A stretch of DNA of 64,000 nucleotides from Klebsormidium nitens (lineage: Eukaryota > Plantae > Klebsormidiophyceae), in assembly GCA_000708835.1 (NCBI GenBank), contig DF237151.1, positions 62,001 to 126,000 on the forward strand, in the 5' to 3' direction. The notes under the pieces are model-generated. The model saw nothing but the letters and a program-made list of their open reading frames with translations, searched no databases and was not told the origin of the DNA. Below are positions 7,821 through 63,000 of the stretch, one piece after another (positions within the stretch are counted from its first letter, which is position 1; every line of letters begins with the position of its first letter). The translations under genes and the position numbers were made by a program.

Positions 7821-8629
7821 CTATTCGTAATTATGCATGCACACTGCGTATGCCTGGTTAATGCACTCATTGGCCGGTACGCTCGGGGGGCAAACCGGAG
7901 TCGTGTTACAGACGCACTCCCACTGGTTAAAATCACCGGTCTCTACTCCCGGGCCGGCACGGATGACGTTGTTGGGACCGGGGCAGGAGCAGCCCCCCCC
8001 GGTCAGGGTCATATAACTGGCGCAACTCGCAATGTAGAGAGTCGTTCCAGGGTAGGGGCCATCCGACCACTTGTTGGCGCTGTATGTCGTCGTGTGTATC
8101 CGAAAGGGAGCTGCTTTGGGTGCGCTGGCTGAGCGAGAGAAAGGAGCAAACTTAGCGAAAGAGGAACGCGCTCAACACCTATTTGAAATGCTTCGAATGC
8201 TTGACATAAGTTCGAACTTTGAGCGTTCCTGTTCTGGAGAACTTGACTCCCACGAAGAATGGCTAAATCACCTGAGGAGAATGGCAGTGGTTCAGCAAAA
8301 CCTCGGGAGTCTCTGCAGAATGATTACCACGTTCGCGACTCTCTCCTGTACCCAAGCTCTCTCCTACGTATGTTTCCTAATCAACAAAGAACACTGTTGC
8401 TCGAGGGTTGCCTCCTACATTGATGGGCCATCTTAAATCTTACAAAGAAGACGTACTGCTTACTACTGGTAGGGGTGGGAGTCGAAGTGCTAGATAGCCC
8501 CCCGGTGGGTAAGGAAACAGTCGAACCGGCCTGTCTGCTGACGTGGCCGCCAGGCACGGGGCGGCACTCCGAGGCGTATGGAAACGCAGCCAGCAAGACG
8601 ACCCAAGAGAGCAGTACCACCCTGCTCAT
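7821..8629 (-). CDS. Small secreted Cys-rich protein, paralogue A (about 157 aa, 2 exons)
   Basis: Exons 8629-8464 and 8128-7821 joined in frame by a phase-1 gtaagc...ctcag intron. Signal-peptide-like MSRVVLLSWVVLLAAFPYASEC, then an S/T/P-rich linker, then an 8-Cys domain ending AYAVCMHNYE*. Confidence 0.85.
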
Positions 8630-8799
8630 ATCTGCGACGCAAGAATCACACGAAATTACAAGCAGCGAGAGTCCTTTCTGAAACGCCCTTTCAGCTTACT
8701 GTGTGACTACTGAGGTCATCTCAAACTTCAGCAAGTTAGCTACTAGTGAATCTGCAAAACATTGACGGTTCAGGTGCACAAAGGTTCATAAATCTGTTC

Positions 8800-9900
8800 G
8801 GACTGGCAGTCTCCTGCCTTTGTAAGAAAAGACGTGTTGTCTCCACGAATCTCTACACGTGCTCAGATCTCTCGAGAAGAACCGGCCCAAGAGAAGAAAC
8901 TTCGATTTCACACAGAATGACTGTTCAACTTCGACGTCCTGAGCACCTGTTCAATCAGACGGCGTGCACTTGCTGAAATCGAGGATTTCATGGGCAGCTC
9001 AAGAGCCATCACGTCGCGCATCGCTCGAATCCGATGTTTCCCATGAGCTTGACAAGGCACTCTTATCCAGTGTTCAATCAGTAGCAAGAACGGCAGTCCC
9101 TGATAATACCCACTTGGTTAAGCAAGGACAGCGATTCTGACACAGCCCGTAGCAAATTACAAAGGAAGGCTGCCCTTTGTCTGACAAGTTGGAAGCCATA
9201 TCCATTCTGGCACACGTCTCTTCCTAGTGCCACTGTGCGGCCGCGAATCAGAGGTCTCCAAGAAAATCTGTATAACACCACCTTTGGCAAGGAGTGCCGG
9301 GCCATCCCACCTCCCCAATAAGCGTTTTGCTATGCAGATTGCTACACGGCGCCATTCTCGACCAAGAACGAAAATGGACTCTAGCTTTCATTGGACCTTC
9401 CCTTTTTACCCACCTGGAGAAGCGCCGCAACGTTTGCAGGATGCCATGGCTCCCGAAGTAGTTCCCGGCGCGCAAGAAACTGTGGGCAACTTAGATTCAA
9501 AGCTTTTTCGGACTGCAAGTCGGATCTTCTATGAGGAGGACTCGAACAGAAAGCTGACACAGTGCTGGCTGGCGGATACGCGAAGAGTTTTCTGGACTGG
9601 AAAAAGCTGCAAAGACAGCGGAAACTCGAGTACTATAACGGGCGGCGGTTGTAGGTTCCCCTTCAAACTAATTCTCACTACGTCCTCAAGCTGATTCTGG
9701 CTTCAAGATGCGTTTTCGCGCAGCGGATTTTGCCTAGCTCAGGCAGCTCTTGTCAAGAGGTTGCCGCTTCACTTCAAGTATACCAGCTGGGCGCCACAGC
9801 TTTTCTTTCAGGCTGTTTCTCTCCTGAAGCAGCTGCCTCACGTGTGAGGGTTACTGATGACGGCTTGGAGACCGTTCAATGGCGCCGCACTGCAAGTCCG
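8800..9900 (-). pseudogene. Decayed LRR-like gene relic upstream of paralogue A
   Basis: Aligns by eye with 13000-14140 (minus) and 15060-16250 (plus), e.g. shared ctgcaaacgttgc...caggtggg, cttgaggacgta and gagct.g.ca. Multiple stops and frameshifts; Leu-periodic fragments. The LRR assignment is inference. Confidence 0.5.
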
Positions 9901-10029
9901 CGCAAGTCAAAAGTCGTCTGAGAGTCAGCCCTCGAAACTCATTTAGTGCTGATCGAGGTTGACAGGGACGAGGTTATAAAGCCGGGCGCCAGGGCAGGCG
10001 CCGTTTGTACTTCAATGAACTGAGGTCGC

Positions 10030-10720
10030 CGGCCAGAAGGGGCCGAGAGCTGACGTCACTGACTTCACCTACGGTGCGATGCAGCTCCGTCGCGCATTTA
10101 CTGCTGGACTTCGCCGGGCGTGGGGGTCGACGTCGGACGACCTTTATACTGACAGCTGCAAATCACCCAGCGTTATGACGTAACCGGGAATGTCAGAACA
10201 TTTGGCTGCTTCATTTACTAGGACGTAGTGAGACTCAGCTGAGGAAACTCGGCCAGACTGAAAACCAACCTGGTAATCAGGTCGACGTCTTCATCTCTGA
10301 CGTATCATGAATTGAGAGCCATTCTAAAGCGAGCAATTCCGCACTTCATCCGATCAGCACTGTGTGCCTACGCCCTTTTTGATCGAGGTCAACGTCCACC
10401 ACGAGACGCATGTCTTTCTGCTGAAACGTCGACACTACCGGCCGGCCATTCTATTTGCAACCAATCGAAGAACTGCATGGTAGACGTCAGCGGTGCGCTG
10501 GAGGCTGCCATGAAGCGTTGGCCGATTGGTTGAGCTCGTCGAAGCAGAACGACCAGAACGATTAAGAGTACGCCAGGAGACTGGAGGCGCGAGCATGATC
10601 GGATATGCGAACAGGTGGTCGCAGTGGGCACATCTCTTAAACGACGTACGTGAATATGTTATGGACGATTCTTTTCTTAAACAGCATATAGACTGTGAGC
10701 TCGTAATCACGCTGGCAAGG
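10030..10720 (+). pseudogene. Relic(s) convergent on paralogue B, homologous to 18450-18750
   Basis: gcgatgca..c.cgtcg.gcatttactg.tggacttcg (10077-10112) and gagcatgatcgga (about 10590) match the reverse complement of 18540-18700. Contains the LEAAMKR version of the motif recurring across the LRR field. Confidence 0.45.
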
Positions 10721-11427
10721 CCGGTTTTAAGTGTGGCGTCAGAATCTTAAGATCGACGCCGTTGAAGCTCTTTAAGCGAGCACAACCATGACGCCCCCTT
10801 TGATTTGATCGTGAGTGCGGTTTCTGTGCGAGCGGAAAGACAAGGTTGACCGTCGCTCTCTAAAGACCCGTTCGCTTTATGAGGTGCTTGCCAGCAGTGT
10901 TCGGACACTAAGGTCCGAGTCGTCGAATATAGTTGATCGAAAAAGGATAGCTTCGATCAGGGGTCATTAGCGGATGCAGTAATAGCTTCTCGCAGCGGAG
11001 AATGCTGTGCTTTCGACCGAATTACTTGCCGAATTCCATCACATATTGCATTCATACTGACAGACGTCCTTTACAGCATCATACTTCTGCAAGAATCATT
11101 GTTCGCCGACCAGAGTAGATGAAAAGCGGTTGCGCCTTGGAGTAGTGGCTTCAACCGTCTTGAAGGGGGCCAAATAAAGTCAACATCAATAGCAATGCAT
11201 ACATGATCTTTCTCACAACCCGCTGCACTGGTCAAAGCTGCGTGAGGTACATCGAGCACACAGATGTAGGGACCAGACAGACGTCGCAGCTACTTGGCAT
11301 GCATGGTCCGCCTCTGTTCTGCTTGTGCTGCCAGGTTTAAACGTTAATCAGCAGCTAGGCACAGTACGGCTGACTAGACAACGGTACGTCGACCCCCCTA
11401 GCTAGCTGGCGGCTGGGCCCCCCTTTG

Positions 11428-12714
11428 TCATTCCGCACACACTGCATACGCTATGTTGTGGCACTCGCCGGCCGGCACCCCGGAGGGACATGACGGATTT
11501 ATGCTGCAATTGCATTGCCAGCTGTAGATATCATCGTGCATTTTTACCGGGCCAGCAAAAACGATGTTACTGCTGCCGGGGCAGGAGCAGCTCCCCCCGG
11601 TCAGGGTCTCCCGAGTGCCGCACAGCGCGATGTAGATCAGTGTGCCGGGATACGGGCTGGTCGCTTCCATAATGGTGCTCCTGATGCGAGTGGACAGACG
11701 TGACTCAGGTGCTGCACGGGAGAAGGGGAAGGCAAGTGAGATCGAAGAAGAATGAGTCAAGTAGGTAAAAGGGGAGATCGCGCCGCTTCAGATTCAAACG
11801 GAAAAAGGAATCAAGAAAAAGGTAAGGGAGAAGGCGGGGAGAAGGGACAAAAAGTAAGAAAGACGAATTGAAGCAGGTGAAAGGGGAGAATCGCGCCGGT
11901 TCAAATTCGGACGAAAAAAGAAGAAAGAGAAAAAGAAGGAAGAGAAGAGAAACGGGGAAAACGGAAAATGGAAAACGGAAAACGGAAGTGATTGTTGTCC
12001 GGAGCAAGTGGTGGTGCTCCAGTCCGCGCTTTGTCTCGTTCAAGACCCAATCAAGAAGCGATCTTGAGCTAGGAATAGGCAGTAAAAGTACTTAGGGGAC
12101 TCGCGGTGTGCCTTTCTGGACACATCGGATTCTTAGTCACACTTCATTTCCTGGCAGTCATCGGACAATCAAGTGAATCAACCTGAAGTCGTGGAGCAGA
12201 GCCTGGGAGTCGGCCACAATTCATTGATCCTTTTCGACTTTGTGAGAAGAGACCTACTTTGTCCTGGTTTCAAATTTGCTTGAGTCCGGCGACGTCCCCT
12301 GGTTCTTCGGCGAAACGGTCCTTGACAACGCCCTCCAATGAAAGCAAATATGCGAGCTTTCTAGCAAGGGGACCCAGATCGAGAAGCGTGAGATTGGAGG
12401 GGCCCTTCTTGCGGATAAGATTGGAGTGCTGATCGATCCAAATTGCTCGAGGGGAGTAACGCACGCCCTCTCAGGGACAATCAAGTAGCACAGGCCAGAT
12501 CTCAAAGCGAGAAGCTTAAGTCCGTTCAGGACTTACCGCTAGTAGGGCTGGGAGCCACAGTGCTGGCTGGCGCGTTAATGGTTGTTCCAGGGGATAAGGT
12601 AGCCAAAGTGCCGGCCACTTTGCTGACCTGGCTGCCAGGCTCGGTGCGGCACTCCGAGGCGTCGGGGAAAGCAGCCAGCAAGACGATCCAGGACAGCAAG
12701 GCAAATTCGTTCAT
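11428..12714 (-). CDS. Small secreted Cys-rich protein, paralogue B (about 153 aa, 2 exons)
   Basis: Exons 12714-12537 and 11711-11428, phase-1 gtaagt...gtgcag intron. Reads MNEFALLSWIVLLAAFPDASECRTEPG...TSAPESRL...CGTRETLTGGSCSC...WQCNC...AYAVCAE*. Confidence 0.87.
11760..11990. repeat. Purine-rich low-complexity intron tract with an internal duplication of about 112 bp
   Basis: ggggagatcgcgccgcttcagattc (11771) versus ggggagaatcgcgccggttcaaattc (11883); short ggaaaac-type repeats at about 11955-11985. Confidence 0.75.
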
Positions 12715-12999
12715 AGCTGCAGCGTAGGACTCACAAGAGTTACACGCAGCAAAAGAACCGAGTGAAGGCTCAGTCAGCTGATTGTGCAATTATACGGCTG
12801 AGGTTATCAGCCTAGCTAGTAGTGACTCTGCATCCTTACGACAAGTAAGGGGCAGCCGATGGGTCTTGACTTTATCTGCCTTATTCTTCTGAGTTGGTCC
12901 GACTAGCTGACAGTTGAAGACTCCATCAACGGAGCTCCACAAACGATGAGAAGCTAGTATTTCCTCGGGCGCACATGCTCAGAAAAGCACTACCGTGAG

Positions 13000-14140
13000 A
13001 GTCAGACGCGTTCAACCTCAGCTCAGTGCACCTTATCAGACCGCTAACACGTCAGTGCAAGGCTTGCTGAAACAGGCGTTCCAAACTGGTGCTGCCCCAG
13101 TAGGTTTAACCGCGCGGTTGACTTCAAGTAGGAGCTTGACAAACCAGTGCTAAAAGATCCTAGCTCATGTTCAGGCAGACAAGATGATGTTCTTGCAAAG
13201 AAATCCTTAGTACTGGTTGAGATTGTCGAGAGAGGAATAAGAGAGACCGCAGACCCCTTGGTGAAATACTTGTAGGTAGCAATTGTGTCGATTGAAGGCA
13301 ATCAGATCATATTTAAGGAAAGCTTTGTAGACCTGTTTGATAGATCATAAAGCCTAATCACCCTGGCCGTTTCTTTCCCCCAACTCTCCTCCTCGTGCCA
13401 AAACCGCTGAGCTGCCGGGATCCAGAATTCCGCTACCAAACTTTTCTAAAAGCAGGTTTAGCAAACGGCACCTGCCACATCCTAACAAGCCTTTCTCCTC
13501 AAGGCGCCCAGTATTCGACCAGAAACACAAATGGAGTGCTGCTTCCACTGGACCTTCGAATTCGGGCCTTTTTCACCCACCTGGAAAAGGGCAACGTTTG
13601 CAGGACGCCATGTCTCTTGAAGTGGGTCCCACCACACGGGAAGTGTAGGCAACTCAGAGTCAAATCTTTTCGCGACAAGTCGGACCTGCTACAATGACGA
13701 CTAGCACAAAATGCTTGACACAGTGGATGGCCGATCACGGAAAACAGAACGTTTCTTTTGGACCAGGAAAAGCTACCGAGGATGACGAGGACAATCAGAA
13801 ACTCGTGGAGTTCTATAACGGGTGGCGCTTGTAGCTTCTCCTTCAGAATGAAGTCTCAATTACTACGTACGTCCTCAAGCGCGCTCCGCTTCTGGCTCGA
13901 TGCGCCTTCAGCACGCTGTGAATGGCGAGCTCAAGCAAATTGCTCAAGAGGTTGCGAGTTGGCGAGTTACTCCAAGCTTGTGCAATATGTGGCTGCGACT
14001 TGCGTGACACCGCTTCTAGTTTCACGCTGTCAGGTCTATCCCTAAGCTGAACTTGTAGAGGCGCTGCCACATGTAGGTAGTGGGCGCTACTGAAAAGTGA
14101 ATGCTTGAGGCGCAGCAATCGAGGCGCCGCAGTGCAAGTC
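13000..14140 (-). pseudogene. Decayed LRR-like gene relic upstream of paralogue B
   Basis: Homologous to 8800-9900 and 15060-16250. Fragments such as EKLQAPPVIELHEFLIVL and PANVALFQVGEK are interrupted by stops. Confidence 0.5.
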
Positions 14141-14579
14141 AGATCAGTCTTTTAAACCGGCAGTGTCTGTACAAGTATATAAGCAGCTCTTTAGTACTGC
14201 CGCCCCGAATCAAATGGCTGCTGTGGTATACTTATTCTAAAAGCGGCATAGCTGGCAGACACTGTCAGCTTTAACCTCACAGCTGTGATTGTTTGACCGT
14301 CTTCATCAAGGGGCATCAAAGATGAAAGGGAGATTGGCCGTTTCAATCCTGCTGATTTGGAGTTGACCTTTCAGCTCAGACGCCGGTCTCAGTACCGAGT
14401 CCTTTAGTACCTATATACGGACGTAGTTTAATACGCAGTGGGGCTTTTTGCAGCTGTTGACGCTGACGTAGCTGCCAACTCAAAAGCGTTGACTCTACGT
14501 ACACTTTCTATTCCGTCAGCAATAAAGGTACGACATCGGTACGTGCTGTAACTTATTATATGGCGTGTTGTTTTTGCGT

Positions 14580-14782
14580 ACCCAGCCGGCTGGAGCACGG
14601 TCCGACCGGTGCCTCGGAAGGCGCCTATTAGCCGGCTGTGGTTCGGCCGGAAAACCGGCAACATCCACCGCCGAACCGGCTCGGATTAATTGGTGGTCAA
14701 AAGCATCAGACCGGTAGATATTTGCAGTCGGCCGGCTGAAAATTAAACGAAGGGTGGCCGGTACAATGCCGGTACCGGCCAA
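14580..14782. other. CCGG-dense block in the spacer between the inverted B and C arms
   Basis: 11 CCGG (nearly all RCCGGY) in about 200 bp, including cagccggctg, tagccggctg, cggccggctg and gccggtac x2. Confidence 0.55.
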
Positions 14783-15059
14783 AAGTTGGTGACAATTTCG
14801 TACTCCGACTCTCGAATTTATGTGTCAAAATTCAAACCCTGCGCTGCATTCCACCGTAGGTGACGTCAGCACCCATTGAATTCAACGGCAGACCAGGCCT
14901 GGACACCAGTCACACCACTGAGATGTACTGCTGGCAGCTCCGCATCAGTAAATAATGCACTTTCAAGAGCTGACGCTAAACAAGCATATGAATCGAAACT
15001 TTAATTGGACTGACGTTGACTTTCCAACTTTCTCGGTCGGACTGCTGCACTAGTACTAG

Positions 15060-16250
15060 TAGTGCGGCACGTTCGACAAAGCTCATTTGAGATAGTTTTG
15101 GCTTTCACTCAGCGCGCAGTTAGCAGTTGGCATTTTTTATCTGTGGCAGCCCCTTGTTACACTAATATCATCCGGGCAGACCGTCGGAAAGGATTCAGAA
15201 AAGCGGTGCAGCCAACCTTGGTTGCGAGGCACGACATACCGGTATTTCTTGAGCTGGCCACGTTTCAAAAGCATCATCGTTAAACACTCGAGAACATCGG
15301 TTATAGAGTCTAGTATTATGAGTGAGCTGATCTACTGCAACCAAGCAGCTAGTAGAAGGCACGACATCTTTCTTGAGCTGGCCACGTTCAGCGCAAGACC
15401 ATTGCAGAAAGCATCATCAATCCAGAAACTGATCGAGGACAAAGTTGGTAGAGTCTAATATAAGAGTCATGAGCTGATCTAGAGGAGAGGTACAGGTGCC
15501 ACTCTGCGTCCCCAGCTATCAGGCCAGGACTTGCTTGCGAAATCGTACTTTGCCAGCCTTTCCCACCAAAAGTTTCTAGTAGTCTTCCGCATCCATTCAA
15601 CGTTTCATGATCAGCGCGCTGTCTGTGCGAATAGTCCCAATAGCAAGTGCGGCATCTCTCCAATCCTTTGGAAGAGCTTCTGCGCTGAGTCGCCAAGTAC
15701 ACAGCTTTTTGCGCGGGATCTACTTCAAGAGCCTGCATGGCGCCATCCGGCTGCAAACGTTGCCCTTTTTCAGGTGGGCGAAAAAGACAAGTGGAAAAGC
15801 CTCCGTACTTTTTCTGGGCCATCAAGAAATGGGCACCTTGCTGTAACGTTGATAAAACGCCTGTTGAGAAGAAAGTCGCTCATTGCAGAAAAATCATAAA
15901 ACGGCAATTTATCTTTGTTGAGGACATTCACACCCCCAGCAGCATAATGGCGGTTGGAAGGAGATGTAAGAAAGGAGAAGTGGCTGTATTCATTAGGCCG
16001 TCGACTCTGTAAAAGGTTGAAAAGAAACCATGTGGTTCTGTCTCAGCGACTACAATTGAGACAATTGCTACCGTTGTCTGATTTCCCCAAGTCAGTACTA
16101 AAACGCTGCCATTTGTGCTTCAACAAGTAAGATTCGCCCTGAGAGGACATCGACATGCCTGTCTGAACAGGAGATCTGGTCTAGCATCCATTTCTCAAGC
16201 TCCTCAAGAGAGTCAAGCGAGGTTGATACCTGTCAGGCGGCGCACTTTTG
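15060..16250 (+). pseudogene. Decayed LRR-like gene relic upstream of paralogue C (inverted relative to A and B)
   Basis: Plus strand aligns with the minus strand of 13000-14140 (tgtggcagc.cct, aagcggtg, cttgagct.gcca, ctgcaaacgttgccctttt). Contains stops and frameshifts. Confidence 0.5.
15227..15482. repeat. Diverged tandem duplication of about 130 bp
   Basis: aggcacgacat...tttcttgagctggccacgtt...aagcatcatc...agagtcta...gagctgatcta occurs at about 15227-15333 and about 15357-15481. Confidence 0.8.
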
Positions 16251-16600
16251 AAGCGCGGCTGTTTAACATGTGCGTATAATTGCCTGATTTCAACAGGTGC
16301 TCAGGTCGAGACCGGGCGTGTCTGACTCTCAAGTGCTTTGTCCAGAAAGTGTCTGGCTTCTCCTCTATATATGTGTCGAACCGTCGTTGGTGAAAGAGGT
16401 TGACGGCTGCCGACTCAGAGTCAGAACGTTTTGCAGACCTTTCGGTTGCACCATATACGTAATGCTTATCCTGTAGCAGACCTGCTAGCCAATATTGGCG
16501 AAACTTCAGGTATACCCAGTACTCAAATAATCAGCTGAAAGGGCCTTTATTCGATTCTCTCGCCGCTTGTAACGTTGAAAACCAGTCTTGCGCTGCAGGT

Positions 16601-17739
16601 ATGAACAGATTTGTGATGTTGTCATGGGTCGTATTGCTGGCTGCTTTCCCCAACGCCGCGGAGTGCCGCACCGAGCCTGGCGGCCACGTCAGCAAAGTGG
16701 CCGGCACCTTGGCTACCTTACCCCCCGGAACAAGCATTAATGTCACCCCGGCCAACACTGCTGCTCCTACCGCTACTAGCGGTAAGTCCTGAAGGATCCG
16801 CTTTGTTCTTCGATCACAACCCCTTGCCGGCAGTTGATGATGCTCTTCGAATGCCCTAGCTGCGCCGCTTTAGGCATGAGATCACGTTTTAGGAGCATCC
16901 CGGAGCGCGGATTCCTGATTCACAAAAAAGGCCTCTTGGAGTCCCCTTGCTACATCGCTTCTAGAAGCCCGGATCTTGTCGAAGGAGACTCGGAAGCATG
17001 GTCGTAACGAACCGTGTCCAAAGGGAAAAAACGTCGCCGCATTCCATCGCCGAGAAGAGCTTGAAACAAAGACAAAGTTTCCAATCTAAAAGATGGTTGA
17101 AGTTTGTGGGGCCCTCTCTGCTAACGGACAGCTGATACGGGGGTGAAACATCAGTGACTCGACTTGTCTGAAGAGGCAGACCTCTTGCATGAGTACGTTG
17201 ACAAGAAATCCCCAGCGCAAGATTGCTTTGGACATGCCAGTGAACGCAACGAAGCGACTGGAGCCACTTGCTCAGGACGTACATCACCTCCATCATGTTA
17301 AAATTTAGATCCCCTTTTTCCCGTTAGTTTTCCAGTTTTCTATGTTTCTTCTTCCTTCTTCCCGAATCTGAACCGGCGCGATGAAGCTCTCGCGCCTTCT
17401 ATTCACGTAAATGAGTATTCTTACTCACTCGCAAGTTGCCCCTTCTCCCGTACAGCACCCGAGTCGCGCCTTTCTATCGTAAGCACCAACGTCATGCACG
17501 CGGCTAGCCCGTATCCCGGTACGAGGGTCTACATCGCTGCGTGCGGGACTGGGGAGACCCTGACCGGGGGGAGCTGCTCTTGCCCCGGCAGCAGTAACAT
17601 CGCTTTCGCCGGCCCGGGAGTGCTGACCGGGGATCGAAATAGCTGGCAGTGCATCTGCAGTACAACTCCGGCTTGTCCCGCCGGGGTGCCCGCCGGCGAG
17701 TGCGTCAACAATGCATACGCAGTGTGCGCGCACAACTGA
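16601..17739 (+). CDS. Small secreted Cys-rich protein, paralogue C (154 aa, 2 exons)
   Basis: Exons 16601-16781 and 17456-17739, phase-1 gtaagt...tacag intron. Reads MNRFVMLSWVVLLAAFPNAAECRTEPGG...TSAPESRL...CGTGETLTGGSCSC...WQCIC...AYAVCAHN*. Confidence 0.88.
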
Positions 17740-18449
17740 AAGTAGCAGCTGCCGAGGGATCCAATGGAAGTGTATGCTTTTGTGGGGTTTTTGATTGGGT
17801 TTGAGATGGGCCGTGTAGTCAGCCCAGTGGCAGCGGCCAAGGTATCCAACGTAGCTCTAGGTTGTCTTACTGGGTTCGAGATGAGCCCCCCGGATAAGCC
17901 GTGTAGTCAGCTCTTTGACATCTTATTACATCCGACAGACGCAAGAGACATGACCCGTTCCATATTGTCTTAGCTTCGTCACGGTGTTTCTTGTTCGTCA
18001 ATTGTTCTTACGCTTGATTACCATGTGTGCCAATTCATGCACGCATAGAAGATCCTGCTTGCATAAAGAGCAACTCGCTCGGCCCCCAAGCAACCAAGGC
18101 AATCGCTTTGAAACCCGTTTGGTGGGCGAACCATTGTAACAATGACCTATGAATTATACGTGAAAGCCGCTATGGAGGACTCCAGCTTGATCAACAGCTA
18201 ACCGTGTTATATATACTACTGATAGACGACTCCAATGCGGTAGACCCGACTCGAATAGTGCTTGGACACTACTGGCAAGCAGCTCGCAAGCACCTTATAA
18301 AGCGAACGTATCTGTCGAGAGTGACGGTTAGACGGTCAATCTTATGTTTTCGCTCGGGTGCACAGCTGATGATCAACCGGGGGCGTCTGATGTGCTGGCC
18401 TGGCAAGAGAGCTTGAATACGTCAACCTTGTTCTGACGCCACAATACTC

Positions 18450-60015: not shown

Positions 60016-63000
60016 TCATCCGTCCATGTCATACGACTCCGCCCTGCTGCTCGTCTGCGTGCTCCGCTCCTTCATGTTGTGCATCTGCTCCTGCAACCGC
60101 TGACGTGTGCACGTGCCGGCTAGCCACCGCTGCTTCGTGTAGTTCTGCGAGGAGCCACGTCAGCAGTGACGTCAGACATGGGAGGAGTGGATGTGAAGAT
60201 CACAAGCAGAACATGTACCGGTTGGATTCCAGGGCTGGCAGAACCTAGCAACCCTGGAGACTAGAAAACTTAGCAACCCTGAAAGACTACAGCTTTTGAC
60301 ACTGTCAAGAAGCTTTTCCACCGTCACAACTTTACGACGACCTGCTGACTGGTGAGAGTATTGCCAGCAGATACTATGACAGCTGGCAGCCAAGCGGCTG
60401 CGACCTTAAGTGTCAAGAGCATCTACCGTCCTGGATTTCACGAAGCGAATAGAGGAAGGAATAGAGAAGACAAATACTGCAAGGCCTGCCGTCTGATCAA
60501 ACTGTAGACTTCAAGGTGGCTTCTTTTGAGTACAATCTGAAAAGATCATGCCAACGCAGCCAGCAAACGCATATGAGTGCGCTGTCCACACTCACCCGCG
60601 TTGGAAGAGCCTCCGCCAGAGCGAACGACACGGCAACCGGGTCGGTGACGTCTGCAGAGAGGACCTTGTCTCGTCGCCACTCCTGGAAGTGACGTAAGCA
60701 GACGGAGGGTCAGTATCCGATTCTAAAAACCATTTTTGGAAGATTTACGGCATAGTGCAGATCTGCAAGGCCACACTGGACGACCATACTGCGCCGCCCT
60801 TCTTGAGAATTTTTTGAATCCAAGCCGAACAGTTTTTAACACAGCGCAAAGACGGGGAGTACGTAATGCGTTCTCCGTTTCCACAGAGACAGCCGCAGAG
60901 CATCAACGTTACCCAAAGCTCCACCCGACCGTCACGCTATATACACCGCAACTCTTCCTTGAACAACAGCTGCGCCAGCCGGGCTCACCCTCTTCCGCAC
61001 CCTTCAATCAGGAGAGCCTTCAATAAAGCCTTCGAAAGCCCTCACATCCGCAAGCCTTTTGTCTAATAGCTCCACGAATCGGATCCTTCCTGTTGTCTCC
61101 AATGAGGTCATGCGGGATACAATAAGATTCAAAGAGCTGAAGTGCAGACACTAAAACTCCCCAGGGTTCCAAAGTGCCGCCCGACGCAAAATCCTCAAGA
61201 CCGCAACAACCGGCCTTAATCTTTTCACTTACATTAGGGTAGCTCCGTCGAAAGAGCGCTATGCTCCGCCGCGCAAGCCCGATGAGCTCTTCCCGCTCCC
61301 GGTCGCTGGTGCATGGCTCGTCGTCAAAGAACTCCACCTCAGCAACGTACAAGCCAAAACTCGACGGAGGCACCCATATCCTGCGGCAGAAAAAGATCAC
61401 TCGGTGAAGCCAGGGTGTCAAAGAGCAATTGGGGGCCGAGTATGCTGTGACGTGGTTCCAAAGAGTGCAGTGAAATCTTCGATCAAAACCACAGAAGATC
61501 CATCTCAGGCCAATTATGGCCGAAGCTCGACGGGGGGCTCGAGATATCCTGTGACAGAAAACGACCGGTATGTTCGGAGGGTGCATCCTTCGGTATAGGG
61601 GGTGGAATTGTTTGGACACGGTCTCGAGCAGGAACTTGCATGAAAGAAAATAAGCGGCAGCGGGCATGCAAGCCCAAAGTTAAGGAGCGCTTTCGTATCA
61701 TTGGACTCTGTGAATGTGGTGCTATGTTACTAATTTATCTGTCCTGTGAAAGATTTGACGCAAGATGGACGTGTTAAAGCTATTGAAAGGTGTTTCCTGC
61801 TCTCAAGCGGCTCCCTTCGGGAAGTCAGGTTGTCGACAGGAGCTTCAACTCGACGATGTGAAAGGAGCTCGCAAATTTCTGTGTACACAAACAGCAGAAG
61901 AGACAGTATTCCTTTCTCAGGTAGAAATTCAAGGCTTGAGGCTTGCCATTCACAGTCCGGTTCCCAAAGAAAAACTGATAAGACATCCCCGTGCTCTGAT
62001 CTGAGTGGCCTTTGCGTGACCTCAGCATAGTAAAACGAGAAACGAGTACAGCAAAAGCAGATTCTCGGAGTTTGGTCACATTTTATTTTACCAGTCTTGA
62101 TCGAACTTATTTACCCTAGGTCGGGCCTGGAGGTCCAGTACCAGGTGTCGTTTTGAAAAACCTCGTAACTTACTCGCACCTTACATTTCGACACGTGGCA
62201 CCCGCTGGCCGGATCATCTAGACCTCTCAGACATAATCCAAAAGCCCGTGCACCGTACGACCTTCAGTTGAGACTACGGCCGCTTCCTAGGATCACATCA
62301 CTTGCTCACCTGGGCGTTTTAAGGCGAAACCGCTGCAGCCCGTGCAACTCTACATTCGACCGAAAGGCCTCGTCGTACTCAATAACGTCAATGGACGCGG
62401 CAGTTCCGACGATCTGGCCCGTGGCGGGATCGGGGTCTAGGGAGCACACGCCGAGCGGGCTGCCTTCCTCGACACAGTGTCTAGCCTGCACGTTGGAGCA
62501 AGCATTCCTTTCTTTTCATGGGCAGGCGAAAGAATGACGTATCCTTCTTGCCTGAAAACGAATCCAAAGCACGCAGAAGTGTCGACGGTTCAACCCGTGG
62601 CGAGGGGTAGAGAGCACACGTTGAGCGGGCTGCCAAGAGCAATATTTTGCCTGGAGTTGAAGTAAGCGATCTCAATCCTTTCAGGTTCTGCCGGAAGCCT
62701 CTTGAATCTCGTTGCTGTGTGACTGAAAATCGATAGCGGAAATTTCCTGACTTTAACGTCCGTGGTCGGATCAACATCAGCGAGCCGTGCCGGGCGGAAC
62801 AACCCTTATCAAAGCTTAGCTTGCAGATGGAGTTAGCTCTTCCCAAGAACTGCAGAAGCTGCTGATAAGCGCGTACAATTGGTCTCCTCTCCTTCACAGG
62901 GTTTTTGGTCGCGAAATTGCTTTGAAGGTCCTCTCACTCCCTCCCTTGTCTAGCGAGACTTTGGCAGCCTCAGACTACAGTGCTTCTTCTAATCCGGATC

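Follow-up and report, generated by a model that had tools for sequence, protein, structure and literature searches.

The question raised by this locus is whether three similar open reading frames (ORFs), lying close together in the genome of the terrestrial streptophyte green alga Klebsormidium nitens, are functional genes of a distinct family, and what kind of protein such genes would encode. They fall between positions 7821 and 17739 of a 64,000-nucleotide stretch (positions 62,001 to 126,000 of the forward strand of contig DF237151.1, GenBank assembly GCA_000708835.1), the whole of which we term the window. Here we define three paralogous two-exon genes, each encoding ~151-157 amino acids (aa), and propose that they are functional paralogues specifying extracellular "stalk-and-head" proteins, in which a resistin/PCSK9-like, cysteine-rich head is carried on a linker and serves as a multivalent binder at the wall surface. 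To this proposal as a whole we assign a probability of roughly 0.55; its parts are held with differing degrees of confidence, as set out below.

Gene models were built from the DNA and its list of ORFs. When the six exon translations were compared with the window by tblastn, exactly three copies were recovered: copies 1 and 2 stand in tandem, ~4.1 kb apart, and copy 3 has the opposite orientation and faces copy 2 head-to-head (Table 1). The single intron of each copy is in phase 1 and interrupts a homologous codon (ACC, GCA and GCA in copies 1, 2 and 3, respectively), with a GTAAG donor and a CAG acceptor preceded by a pyrimidine-rich tract in every case. In copy 1 a second in-phase acceptor, at 8112-8111, would extend the intron to 353 nucleotides (nt). 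The exon translations of copy 2, joined through the split codon GCA, reproduce residue for residue a K. nitens protein of 153 aa (KFL_002020100; P0001 in our searches), which public records label "hypothetical protein" and whose public model begins at the ATG of the signal peptide. Copies 1 and 3, whose heads share 54-74% identity with that of copy 2, are absent from the results of every search of proteins clustered at 90% identity, and are probably missing from the public K. nitens gene set. What is already known of the family is therefore copy 2, as a hypothetical protein; what is new is a defined family that includes two apparently unannotated genes.

The predicted proteins share a common plan. 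Exon 1 encodes an N-terminal leader with a hydrophobic core of 13-14 residues (mean Kyte-Doolittle value 2.3-2.5) and the invariant sequence LLAAFP.A.ECR, from which, with the other sequence features, we infer that all three proteins are secreted. The ECR motif that directly follows the leader supplies an invariant Cys at the second position of the probable mature chain. It is the ninth invariant Cys of the protein, so that the mature product would have an odd number of them, and this residue is a candidate for an inter-chain disulfide. A linker of ~55 residues follows, made up to 56-59% of Pro, Ala, Ser and Thr and containing 6-7 Pro and 2-4 [AST]P dipeptides. The head, of 76-79 aa, contains eight invariant Cys with the spacing 10-1-22-1-5-8-7, and the segments PYPGT, YIA, TLTGG, CSCPG, AGP, W, VPA.EC and AYAVC are invariant in all three copies. 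Charged residues are scarce in the head, which is acidic (isoelectric point, pI, 4.4-5.4) and consists to 50-61% of Gly, Pro, Ser, Thr, Ala and Asn. A first-pass annotation of this DNA had described three intact paralogues with a phase-1 intron at a shared position, a signal-peptide-like start, an S/T/P-rich linker, the spacing C-x10-C-x-C-x22-C-x-C-x5-C-x8-C-x7-C, and conserved PYPGT, TLTGG, AGP, W and AYAVC; each of these features was recovered as described.

The pattern of divergence among the copies indicates that their coding potential has been maintained. Nei-Gojobori counts were made per exon and added as counts, with no joined sequence. Over the whole coding region the three pairs gave synonymous divergence (dS) of 0.48-0.79 and ratios of nonsynonymous to synonymous divergence (dN/dS, or omega) of 0.36-0.52. 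Within the 8-Cys domain dN/dS fell at 0.29-0.46 (pairwise one-sided Fisher tests, p = 0.0021, 1.8e-5 and 0.0057), and third codon positions there show an excess of changes. The purifying selection previously claimed for these copies is thus borne out by values significantly below 1. The claim that the loop between Cys3 and Cys4 varies among copies is supported: this loop is the most variable segment in two of the three pairs, and omega reaches 0.43-0.78 in pairs that include copy 1, on counts that are small. Because the ORF, the splice sites and all nine Cys are retained in every copy at dS of ~0.5-0.8, we conclude that all three remain intact and have been subject to purifying selection. G+C content at third codon positions (GC3) is 0.68-0.72 in the coding sequence, versus a G+C content of 0.47-0.50 in the introns. 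The sequence evidence, namely intact ORFs, introns at the same codon, the match of copy 2 to P0001, the GC3 contrast, dN/dS and the conserved upstream elements described below, points to three real and probably functional K. nitens genes.

To which family, if any, these genes belong was addressed with the separate exon translations, P0001 being the sole full-length query. Neither the six exon translations nor P0001 matched a family in Pfam-A or NCBIfam at E <= 10; a tartrate-dehydratase match in these scans (E 0.088) was dismissed as noise. Comparison of the profile and of each paralogue with sequences of the PDB returned noise only (30K lipoprotein and WIPI3, E 0.1-1.6) and no resistin. Word searches of 5.8 billion proteins, in which head and leader were taken apart (copy 3 exon 2; P0001 residues 76-153; P0001 residues 1-75) and candidates of up to 268 aa were considered, returned P0001 alone. 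When 1.84 billion representatives, which cover ~15 billion proteins, were searched exhaustively with a HMMER profile, the result was P0001 and one spurious entry, and no bacterial protein at E <= 0.001. The spurious entry (P0002; 311 aa, six units of ~52 residues, five short profile matches at E 1e-5) was rejected as a translated tandem DNA repeat, and illustrates how repeats are drawn by profiles rich in Cys, Pro and Gly. Scans of 185,579 prokaryotic genomes, IMG/VR viral contigs and JGI metagenomes yielded no locus that tblastn confirmed. When the same bacterial and archaeal genomes were scanned for the motif TLTGGxCxCPG, five matches appeared, all in frames filled with stops and, by a rough estimate, about as many as chance would provide. 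Literature searches on KFL_002020100, on secreted Cys-rich proteins of Klebsormidium and on a resistin-like fold or domain brought up nothing relevant. The description of an unrecognised family has thus stood in every sequence library tried, with no clear match to a characterised family, and by the sequences available the family is restricted to Klebsormidium.

The shape of the head was approached through predicted structures. AlphaFold2 was run on an alignment of the three sequences to give two models that differ in the lead copy. Model 1, with copy 3 in the lead, is an all-beta structure of five strands, at a predicted local distance difference test score (pLDDT) of 43.7; model 2 (copy 2 first) is mostly coil, at 55.3. 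When model 1 was compared by Foldseek with 350,542 PDB chains, the C-terminal domain of PCSK9 took ranks 1, 2, 4, 6 and 7, resistin ranks 5 and 10, and RELM-beta rank 15 (E 1.1-4.4, with 1.1 for PCSK9). A search by VIA-align, which is independent of Foldseek, of 48,161 representative PDB chains again placed PCSK9 first (Z 4.7 over 63 of 77 residues at a root-mean-square deviation, rmsd, of 3.0 A) and second (Z 4.3, 64 residues, 4.1 A); the next unrelated chain scored Z 3.2, with resistin at rank 6 (Z 2.9) and RELM-beta at rank 32. A second look at individual PCSK9 modules gave Z 5.0 over 63 of 77 residues for M1 (466-529) and Z 4.2-4.3 with 26-32% identity for M3 (616-681). From a different direction, ESM language-model features for residues 76-153 of P0001 gave, as the best named cluster, one that carries PCSK9_C1/C3 (score 0.88, 172 shared features). 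The ESM Atlas has its own model of P0001 (mean pLDDT 0.60), and a search with the predicted structure of residues 76-153 placed bacterial collagen-like proteins nearest, with template modelling (TM) scores by query of 0.70 and 0.67, together with small unnamed actinobacterial and proteobacterial proteins (0.63-0.67) and a shufflon-protein cluster (0.62). A search of viral folds in BFVD gave no meaningful match.

Several points weigh against a resistin/PCSK9-type head. Confidence is low for both AlphaFold2 models, and structural searches with model 2 found neither PCSK9 nor resistin; each fold score is sub-significant, and one replicate failed. Every Foldseek E-value exceeds 1, and a Z of ~5 lies under the level at which the notes of the VIA tool rate a match above a common arrangement. 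A family present in only one of the ten best ESM matches is, by that tool's own warning, probably wrong. The AlphaFold2 and ESM signals may, moreover, both go back to a single short stretch of similarity at and around the TLTGG-C motif, and family scans detected no Resistin or PCSK9_C domain. The AlphaFold and Foldseek check proposed by the first-pass annotation gave a divided answer, PCSK9 and resistin ranking high for one low-confidence model and going unmatched by the other. The resemblance to resistin and to bacterial collagen-like proteins, which that annotation had suggested, fails at the level of sequence, by Pfam, profiles and motif scan alike, and finds weak, convergent support at the level of fold. 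The two leads, AlphaFold2 with structural search and ESM features, do converge weakly on one uncommon fold family, and, judging from these models, we consider the odds slightly to favor a head that adopts the fold of resistin and the PCSK9 modules.

The most serious competing explanation is that the genes encode a Klebsormidium-specific secreted Cys-rich protein of wall or mucilage with a fold of its own and a structural or tethering role, the likeness to resistin and PCSK9 then arising spuriously from models of low confidence and a short local motif. It would account for the want of a sequence relative in any search, for the second AlphaFold2 model without a fold match and for fold scores that are all sub-significant, and the linker rich in Pro, Ala, Ser and Thr does recall wall glycoproteins. 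Two observations are not easily reconciled with it, however: two methods choose the same rare fold family among tens of thousands, and the Z of PCSK9 exceeds that of the next unrelated chain by more than 1, with 63 of 77 residues matched. We therefore regard it as a real contender of rather low probability.

A horizontal origin, suggested earlier for these genes, would have the head gained from the C-terminal globular domain of a bacterial collagen-like protein, a eukaryotic leader and an intron being added later. The order of the ESM Atlas structure matches, with bacterial collagen-like proteins first and small actinobacterial and proteobacterial proteins next, is what such a transfer might leave, although the tool notes that TM scores above 0.5 mean little at ~60 residues. 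The profile search and the survey of prokaryotic genomes, viral contigs and metagenomes described above gave no prokaryotic relative, the motif scan yielded chance matches only, and the genes have a host-like exon and intron composition and spliceosomal introns in phase 1. The suggestion is thus unsupported, and we consider such a transfer very improbable. Equally hard to sustain, if not slightly harder, is the view that one or more copies, especially 1 and 3, are young silent pseudogenes that have yet to acquire a disabling mutation, as the presence of copy 2 alone in public protein sets and the only moderate pairwise dN/dS might suggest, for dS of 0.5-0.8 speaks of long independent evolution during which no stop, frameshift or lost splice site arose, all copies kept nine Cys, and all three conserve their upstream elements.

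Those elements bear on the earlier description of the flanks as decayed, which proved accurate for part of the duplicated unit. The intron and 3' flank remain alignable between copies 2 and 3, and copy 1 has lost similarity to both in these regions; the upstream elements, in contrast, were kept in all three copies. They are of two kinds. First, 80-130 bp before each ATG are conserved (e.g., CAGCTGA..G.GC, TGTAA and GCAG-NT-ATG), a region that is likely to be a core promoter or 5' untranslated region (UTR). Second, a conserved block of 70-330 bp, here termed the distal island, lies 0.8-1.1 kb upstream of every copy. Read along the gene, its invariant core is CATGGC...CTGCAAACGTT...CAG/GTGGG, the slash marking a putative splice junction, and is also written CATGGC..CTGCAAACGTT..CAGGTGGG. 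Table 1 collects the coordinates.

Table 1. Coordinates of the three genes and their conserved upstream regions (positions in the window).
Feature	Position	Strand	Remarks
Copy 1, gene	7821-8629	(-)	
Copy 1 exon 1	8629..8464	(-)	ATG, signal-peptide-like leader, ECR Cys (codon 8564-8566), start of S/T/P-rich linker; phase-1 end before GTAAGC
Copy 1 intron	8463..8129	(-)	335 nt, GT..AG (GTAAGC...CTCAG)
Copy 1 exon 2	8128..7824, stop 7823-7821	(-)	8-Cys domain 7824-8060
Copy 1 proximal upstream region	8630..8760	(-)	Conserved with copies 2 and 3; GCAG 2 nt before ATG
Copy 1 distal island	9358..9691	(-)	Conserved; putative 5' exon, upstream ORF or enhancer
Copy 2, gene	11428-12714	(-)	
Copy 2 exon 1	12714..12537	(-)	P0001 / KFL_002020100 residues 1-59 plus 1 nt; ECR Cys codon 12649-12651
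Copy 2 intron	12536..11712	(-)	825 nt; CT-rich internal direct repeat at 11718-11968
Copy 2 exon 2	11711..11431, stop 11430-11428	(-)	Completes split codon (residue 60), then residues 61-153 of P0001; 8-Cys domain 11431-11658
Copy 2 proximal upstream region	12715..12845	(-)	Conserved with copies 1 and 3
Copy 2 distal island	13515..13880	(-)	Conserved
Copy 3, gene	16601-17739	(+)	
Copy 3 exon 1	16601..16781	(+)	ECR Cys codon 16664-16666
Copy 3 intron	16782..17455	(+)	674 nt; aligns with copy 2 intron
Copy 3 exon 2	17456..17736, stop 17737-17739	(+)	8-Cys domain 17506-17736
Copy 3 proximal upstream region	16470..16600	(+)	Conserved with copies 1 and 2
Copy 3 distal island	15715..15786	(+)	Core of BLAST match; alignment reaches ~15640-15800

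The island can be read, on its sequence, as a mini-ORF of 10 codons (MASCKRCPFP-like) with a phase-1 donor at its end. Indels among the copies measure 3, 6 and 3 nt inside this mini-ORF, versus 1, 5, 7 and 10 nt upstream of it. In each copy a pyrimidine-rich GCAG lies exactly two bases before the ATG of the signal peptide, so that a splice from the island would stay in frame. The island can be taken for a spliced 5' coding exon, with which the protein would begin 11 residues earlier; donor-like AG/GTGGGT sequences lie near 9400, 13560 and 15780. Two points speak against this: conservation of the proximal 80-130 bp extends to copy 1, in which the coding intron has fully decayed, and the public model has its start codon at the ATG further downstream. 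The island could otherwise be a 5'-UTR exon, an upstream ORF, a cis element of AACGTT type or the relic of a divergent neighbor.

Other features of the duplicated unit were recorded alongside these. On the strand opposite the genes, long ORFs overlie the island at 9227-9694(+) (155 aa) and 15388-15825(-) (145 aa); neither has a Pfam match, and their counterpart in the second unit is broken across several frames. They are possibly a decayed divergent neighbor gene, or chance ORFs. Copies 2 and 3 also share a 47-nt patch, 85% identical between 10849-10895(+) and 18282-18328(-), ~0.55 kb past their stops, which may be what is left of a 3' UTR or terminator of the duplicated unit. The 3' part of the copy 2 and copy 3 introns includes a CT-rich, TTCCGTTTTCC-like stretch of low complexity (11718-11968 and 17337-17382), and the direct repeat inside the copy 2 intron aligns 11718-11850 with 11837-11968 at 72%. 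No Pfam family was matched by ten further long ORFs, taken from the co-duplicated flank and from other parts of the window, and the whole window had no match in Rfam.

Returning to stalk-and-head proteins with a resistin/PCSK9-like head as the preferred explanation, we can outline how such a system might operate. The locus would have arisen through a ~4.1-kb tandem duplication together with one inverted copy. Each product would enter the endoplasmic reticulum and lose its leader by cleavage near A-[AS]/E-C-R (slash, cleavage site), leaving a linker expected to be disordered and O-glycosylated. The eight Cys of the head would form four intradomain disulfides, which by analogy with resistin may comprise a C2/C3-C4/C5 ladder, a clasp (C1-C8) between the terminal strands and a C6-C7 pair that closes a local loop; the probable result, on the models described, is a disulfide-rich beta-sandwich like those of resistin heads and of the three PCSK9 modules. 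Following the same analogy, heads would oligomerize, the odd N-terminal Cys would cross-link chains, and the variable Cys3-Cys4 loop would present an exposed binding surface. The outcome would be a multivalent binder at the surface of the cell wall, engaged in defense against, or adhesion to, microbes or surfaces.

Of the steps in this outline, the function is the one we advance most tentatively: extracellular binding, for defense or adhesion at the wall surface, is suggested by analogy and is the function that we favor, at rather low probability, and a lectin, defense or signaling role may be envisaged. The acidic head (pI 4.4-5.4) is unlike typical cationic antimicrobial proteins and argues against a simple cationic mode of action, a further point to be set against the proposal. 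More speculative still is a wider extension of it, that an ancient extracellular head domain is common to animals, a streptophyte alga and the tips of bacterial collagen-like proteins, with the paralogues assembling as (possibly mixed) trimers, cross-linked through the N-terminal Cys, that bind surfaces or act against microbes in the manner of RELM-beta and resistin; we are inclined to doubt it.

The fold of resistin and the PCSK9 modules is, to our knowledge, known only from animal proteins. If it is indeed present here, a domain of the resistin/RELM hormones and PCSK9 would also occur in a streptophyte alga of an early-diverging lineage, and perhaps in bacteria too, giving the animal field an evolutionary context that is new to it and a simple, single-domain model of how such a head binds its target. 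If it is not, the genes add one more orphan secreted family to the K. nitens genome. For algal biology, two apparently unannotated genes and a defined, lineage-specific family of secreted Cys-rich proteins are gained in either case, and such proteins are plausibly part of how Klebsormidium copes with a terrestrial habitat as regards its own surface, microbes and desiccation.

Comparison with known systems places the family near several and within none of those tested. Proteins of generally similar build offer one reference. Chimeric arabinogalactan and hydroxyproline-rich glycoproteins (e.g., PAC-domain arabinogalactan proteins) likewise combine a signal peptide, a segment rich in Pro, Ala, Ser and Thr (56-59% here) and a Cys-rich globular domain; they are expected to bear clustered [AST]P glycomodules in a region with over 50% of these four residues, a share that the algal linkers pass, although with 6-7 Pro they form no more than 2-4 [AST]P dipeptides. 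The algal proteins further have no Pfam match to Ole e 1/PAC and no glycosylphosphatidylinositol signal. The plant and fungal nsLTP/8CM and hydrophobin families have an 8-Cys pattern that contains CC, whereas the algal head has no CC pair, no Pfam match and a predicted structure (model 1) that is all-beta. Bacterial collagen-like proteins (PF01391 plus an unnamed tail) resemble the algal proteins in bearing a head at the end of an extended stalk, and, between predicted models only, in ESM Atlas TM scores of 0.67-0.70 over 63-65 of 78 residues; they are set apart by the algal linker, which has neither G-X-Y repeats nor periodicity, by the absence of a Collagen match and by the absence of sequence similarity.

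The modules of the Cys/His-rich C-terminal domain of PCSK9 (PCSK9_C1/C2/C3) are another reference. Three such modules of 74-89 aa follow the subtilase domain in tandem, each with six Cys forming three disulfides paired 1-6, 2-5 and 3-4, and the resistin trimer is their structural homologue (PMC9113161). The algal head, at 76-79 aa, is of matching size and, by the weak model 1 only, may be a disulfide-locked beta-sandwich of the same sort; the modules provide both the best structural match to that model in the PDB and the best named cluster of ESM features. The differences tell against the assignment, in that the algal head has eight Cys rather than six and no match to the corresponding hidden Markov models (HMMs). 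It is also a single domain on a linker, is not rich in His and is not preceded by a protease.

Resistin and the RELM proteins (FIZZ, PF06954) provide a parallel in overall build. In that family the head carries a signature of ten Cys with a C-terminal CC and has paired C-x-C strands; heads pack as trimers, which an N-terminal Cys links to one another, and members have been reported to be bactericidal. Like them, the algal proteins are small and probably secreted, with a putative signal peptide, a Cys near the mature N-terminus, a variable segment, and a head of similar size, predicted to be disulfide-rich and all-beta, in which paired C-x-C motifs appear to lie on neighboring predicted strands. 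Superposed on resistin, model 1 (pLDDT 43.7) scores Z 2.9 over 49 residues, with rmsd 2.7 A and 20% of residues identical; the values for RELM-beta are Z 2.4 and 26%. Evidence on the other side is of three kinds: (i) no HMM of the family matches at E <= 10; (ii) the algal head has eight Cys in another spacing and no CC; and (iii) resistin has a coiled-coil helix where the algal proteins have a Pro-rich linker, which, with 6-7 Pro and 56-59% Pro, Ala, Ser and Thr, is not a coiled coil. The algal head is acidic, and its host is an alga and not a vertebrate. By the sequence criteria tested, the family is therefore not a member of resistin, PCSK9_C, collagen-like, nsLTP/8CM or hydrophobin families; it may nonetheless work like resistin-type heads and be distant kin of them, and the possible occurrence of a resistin-type fold in an alga is what makes this locus unusual.

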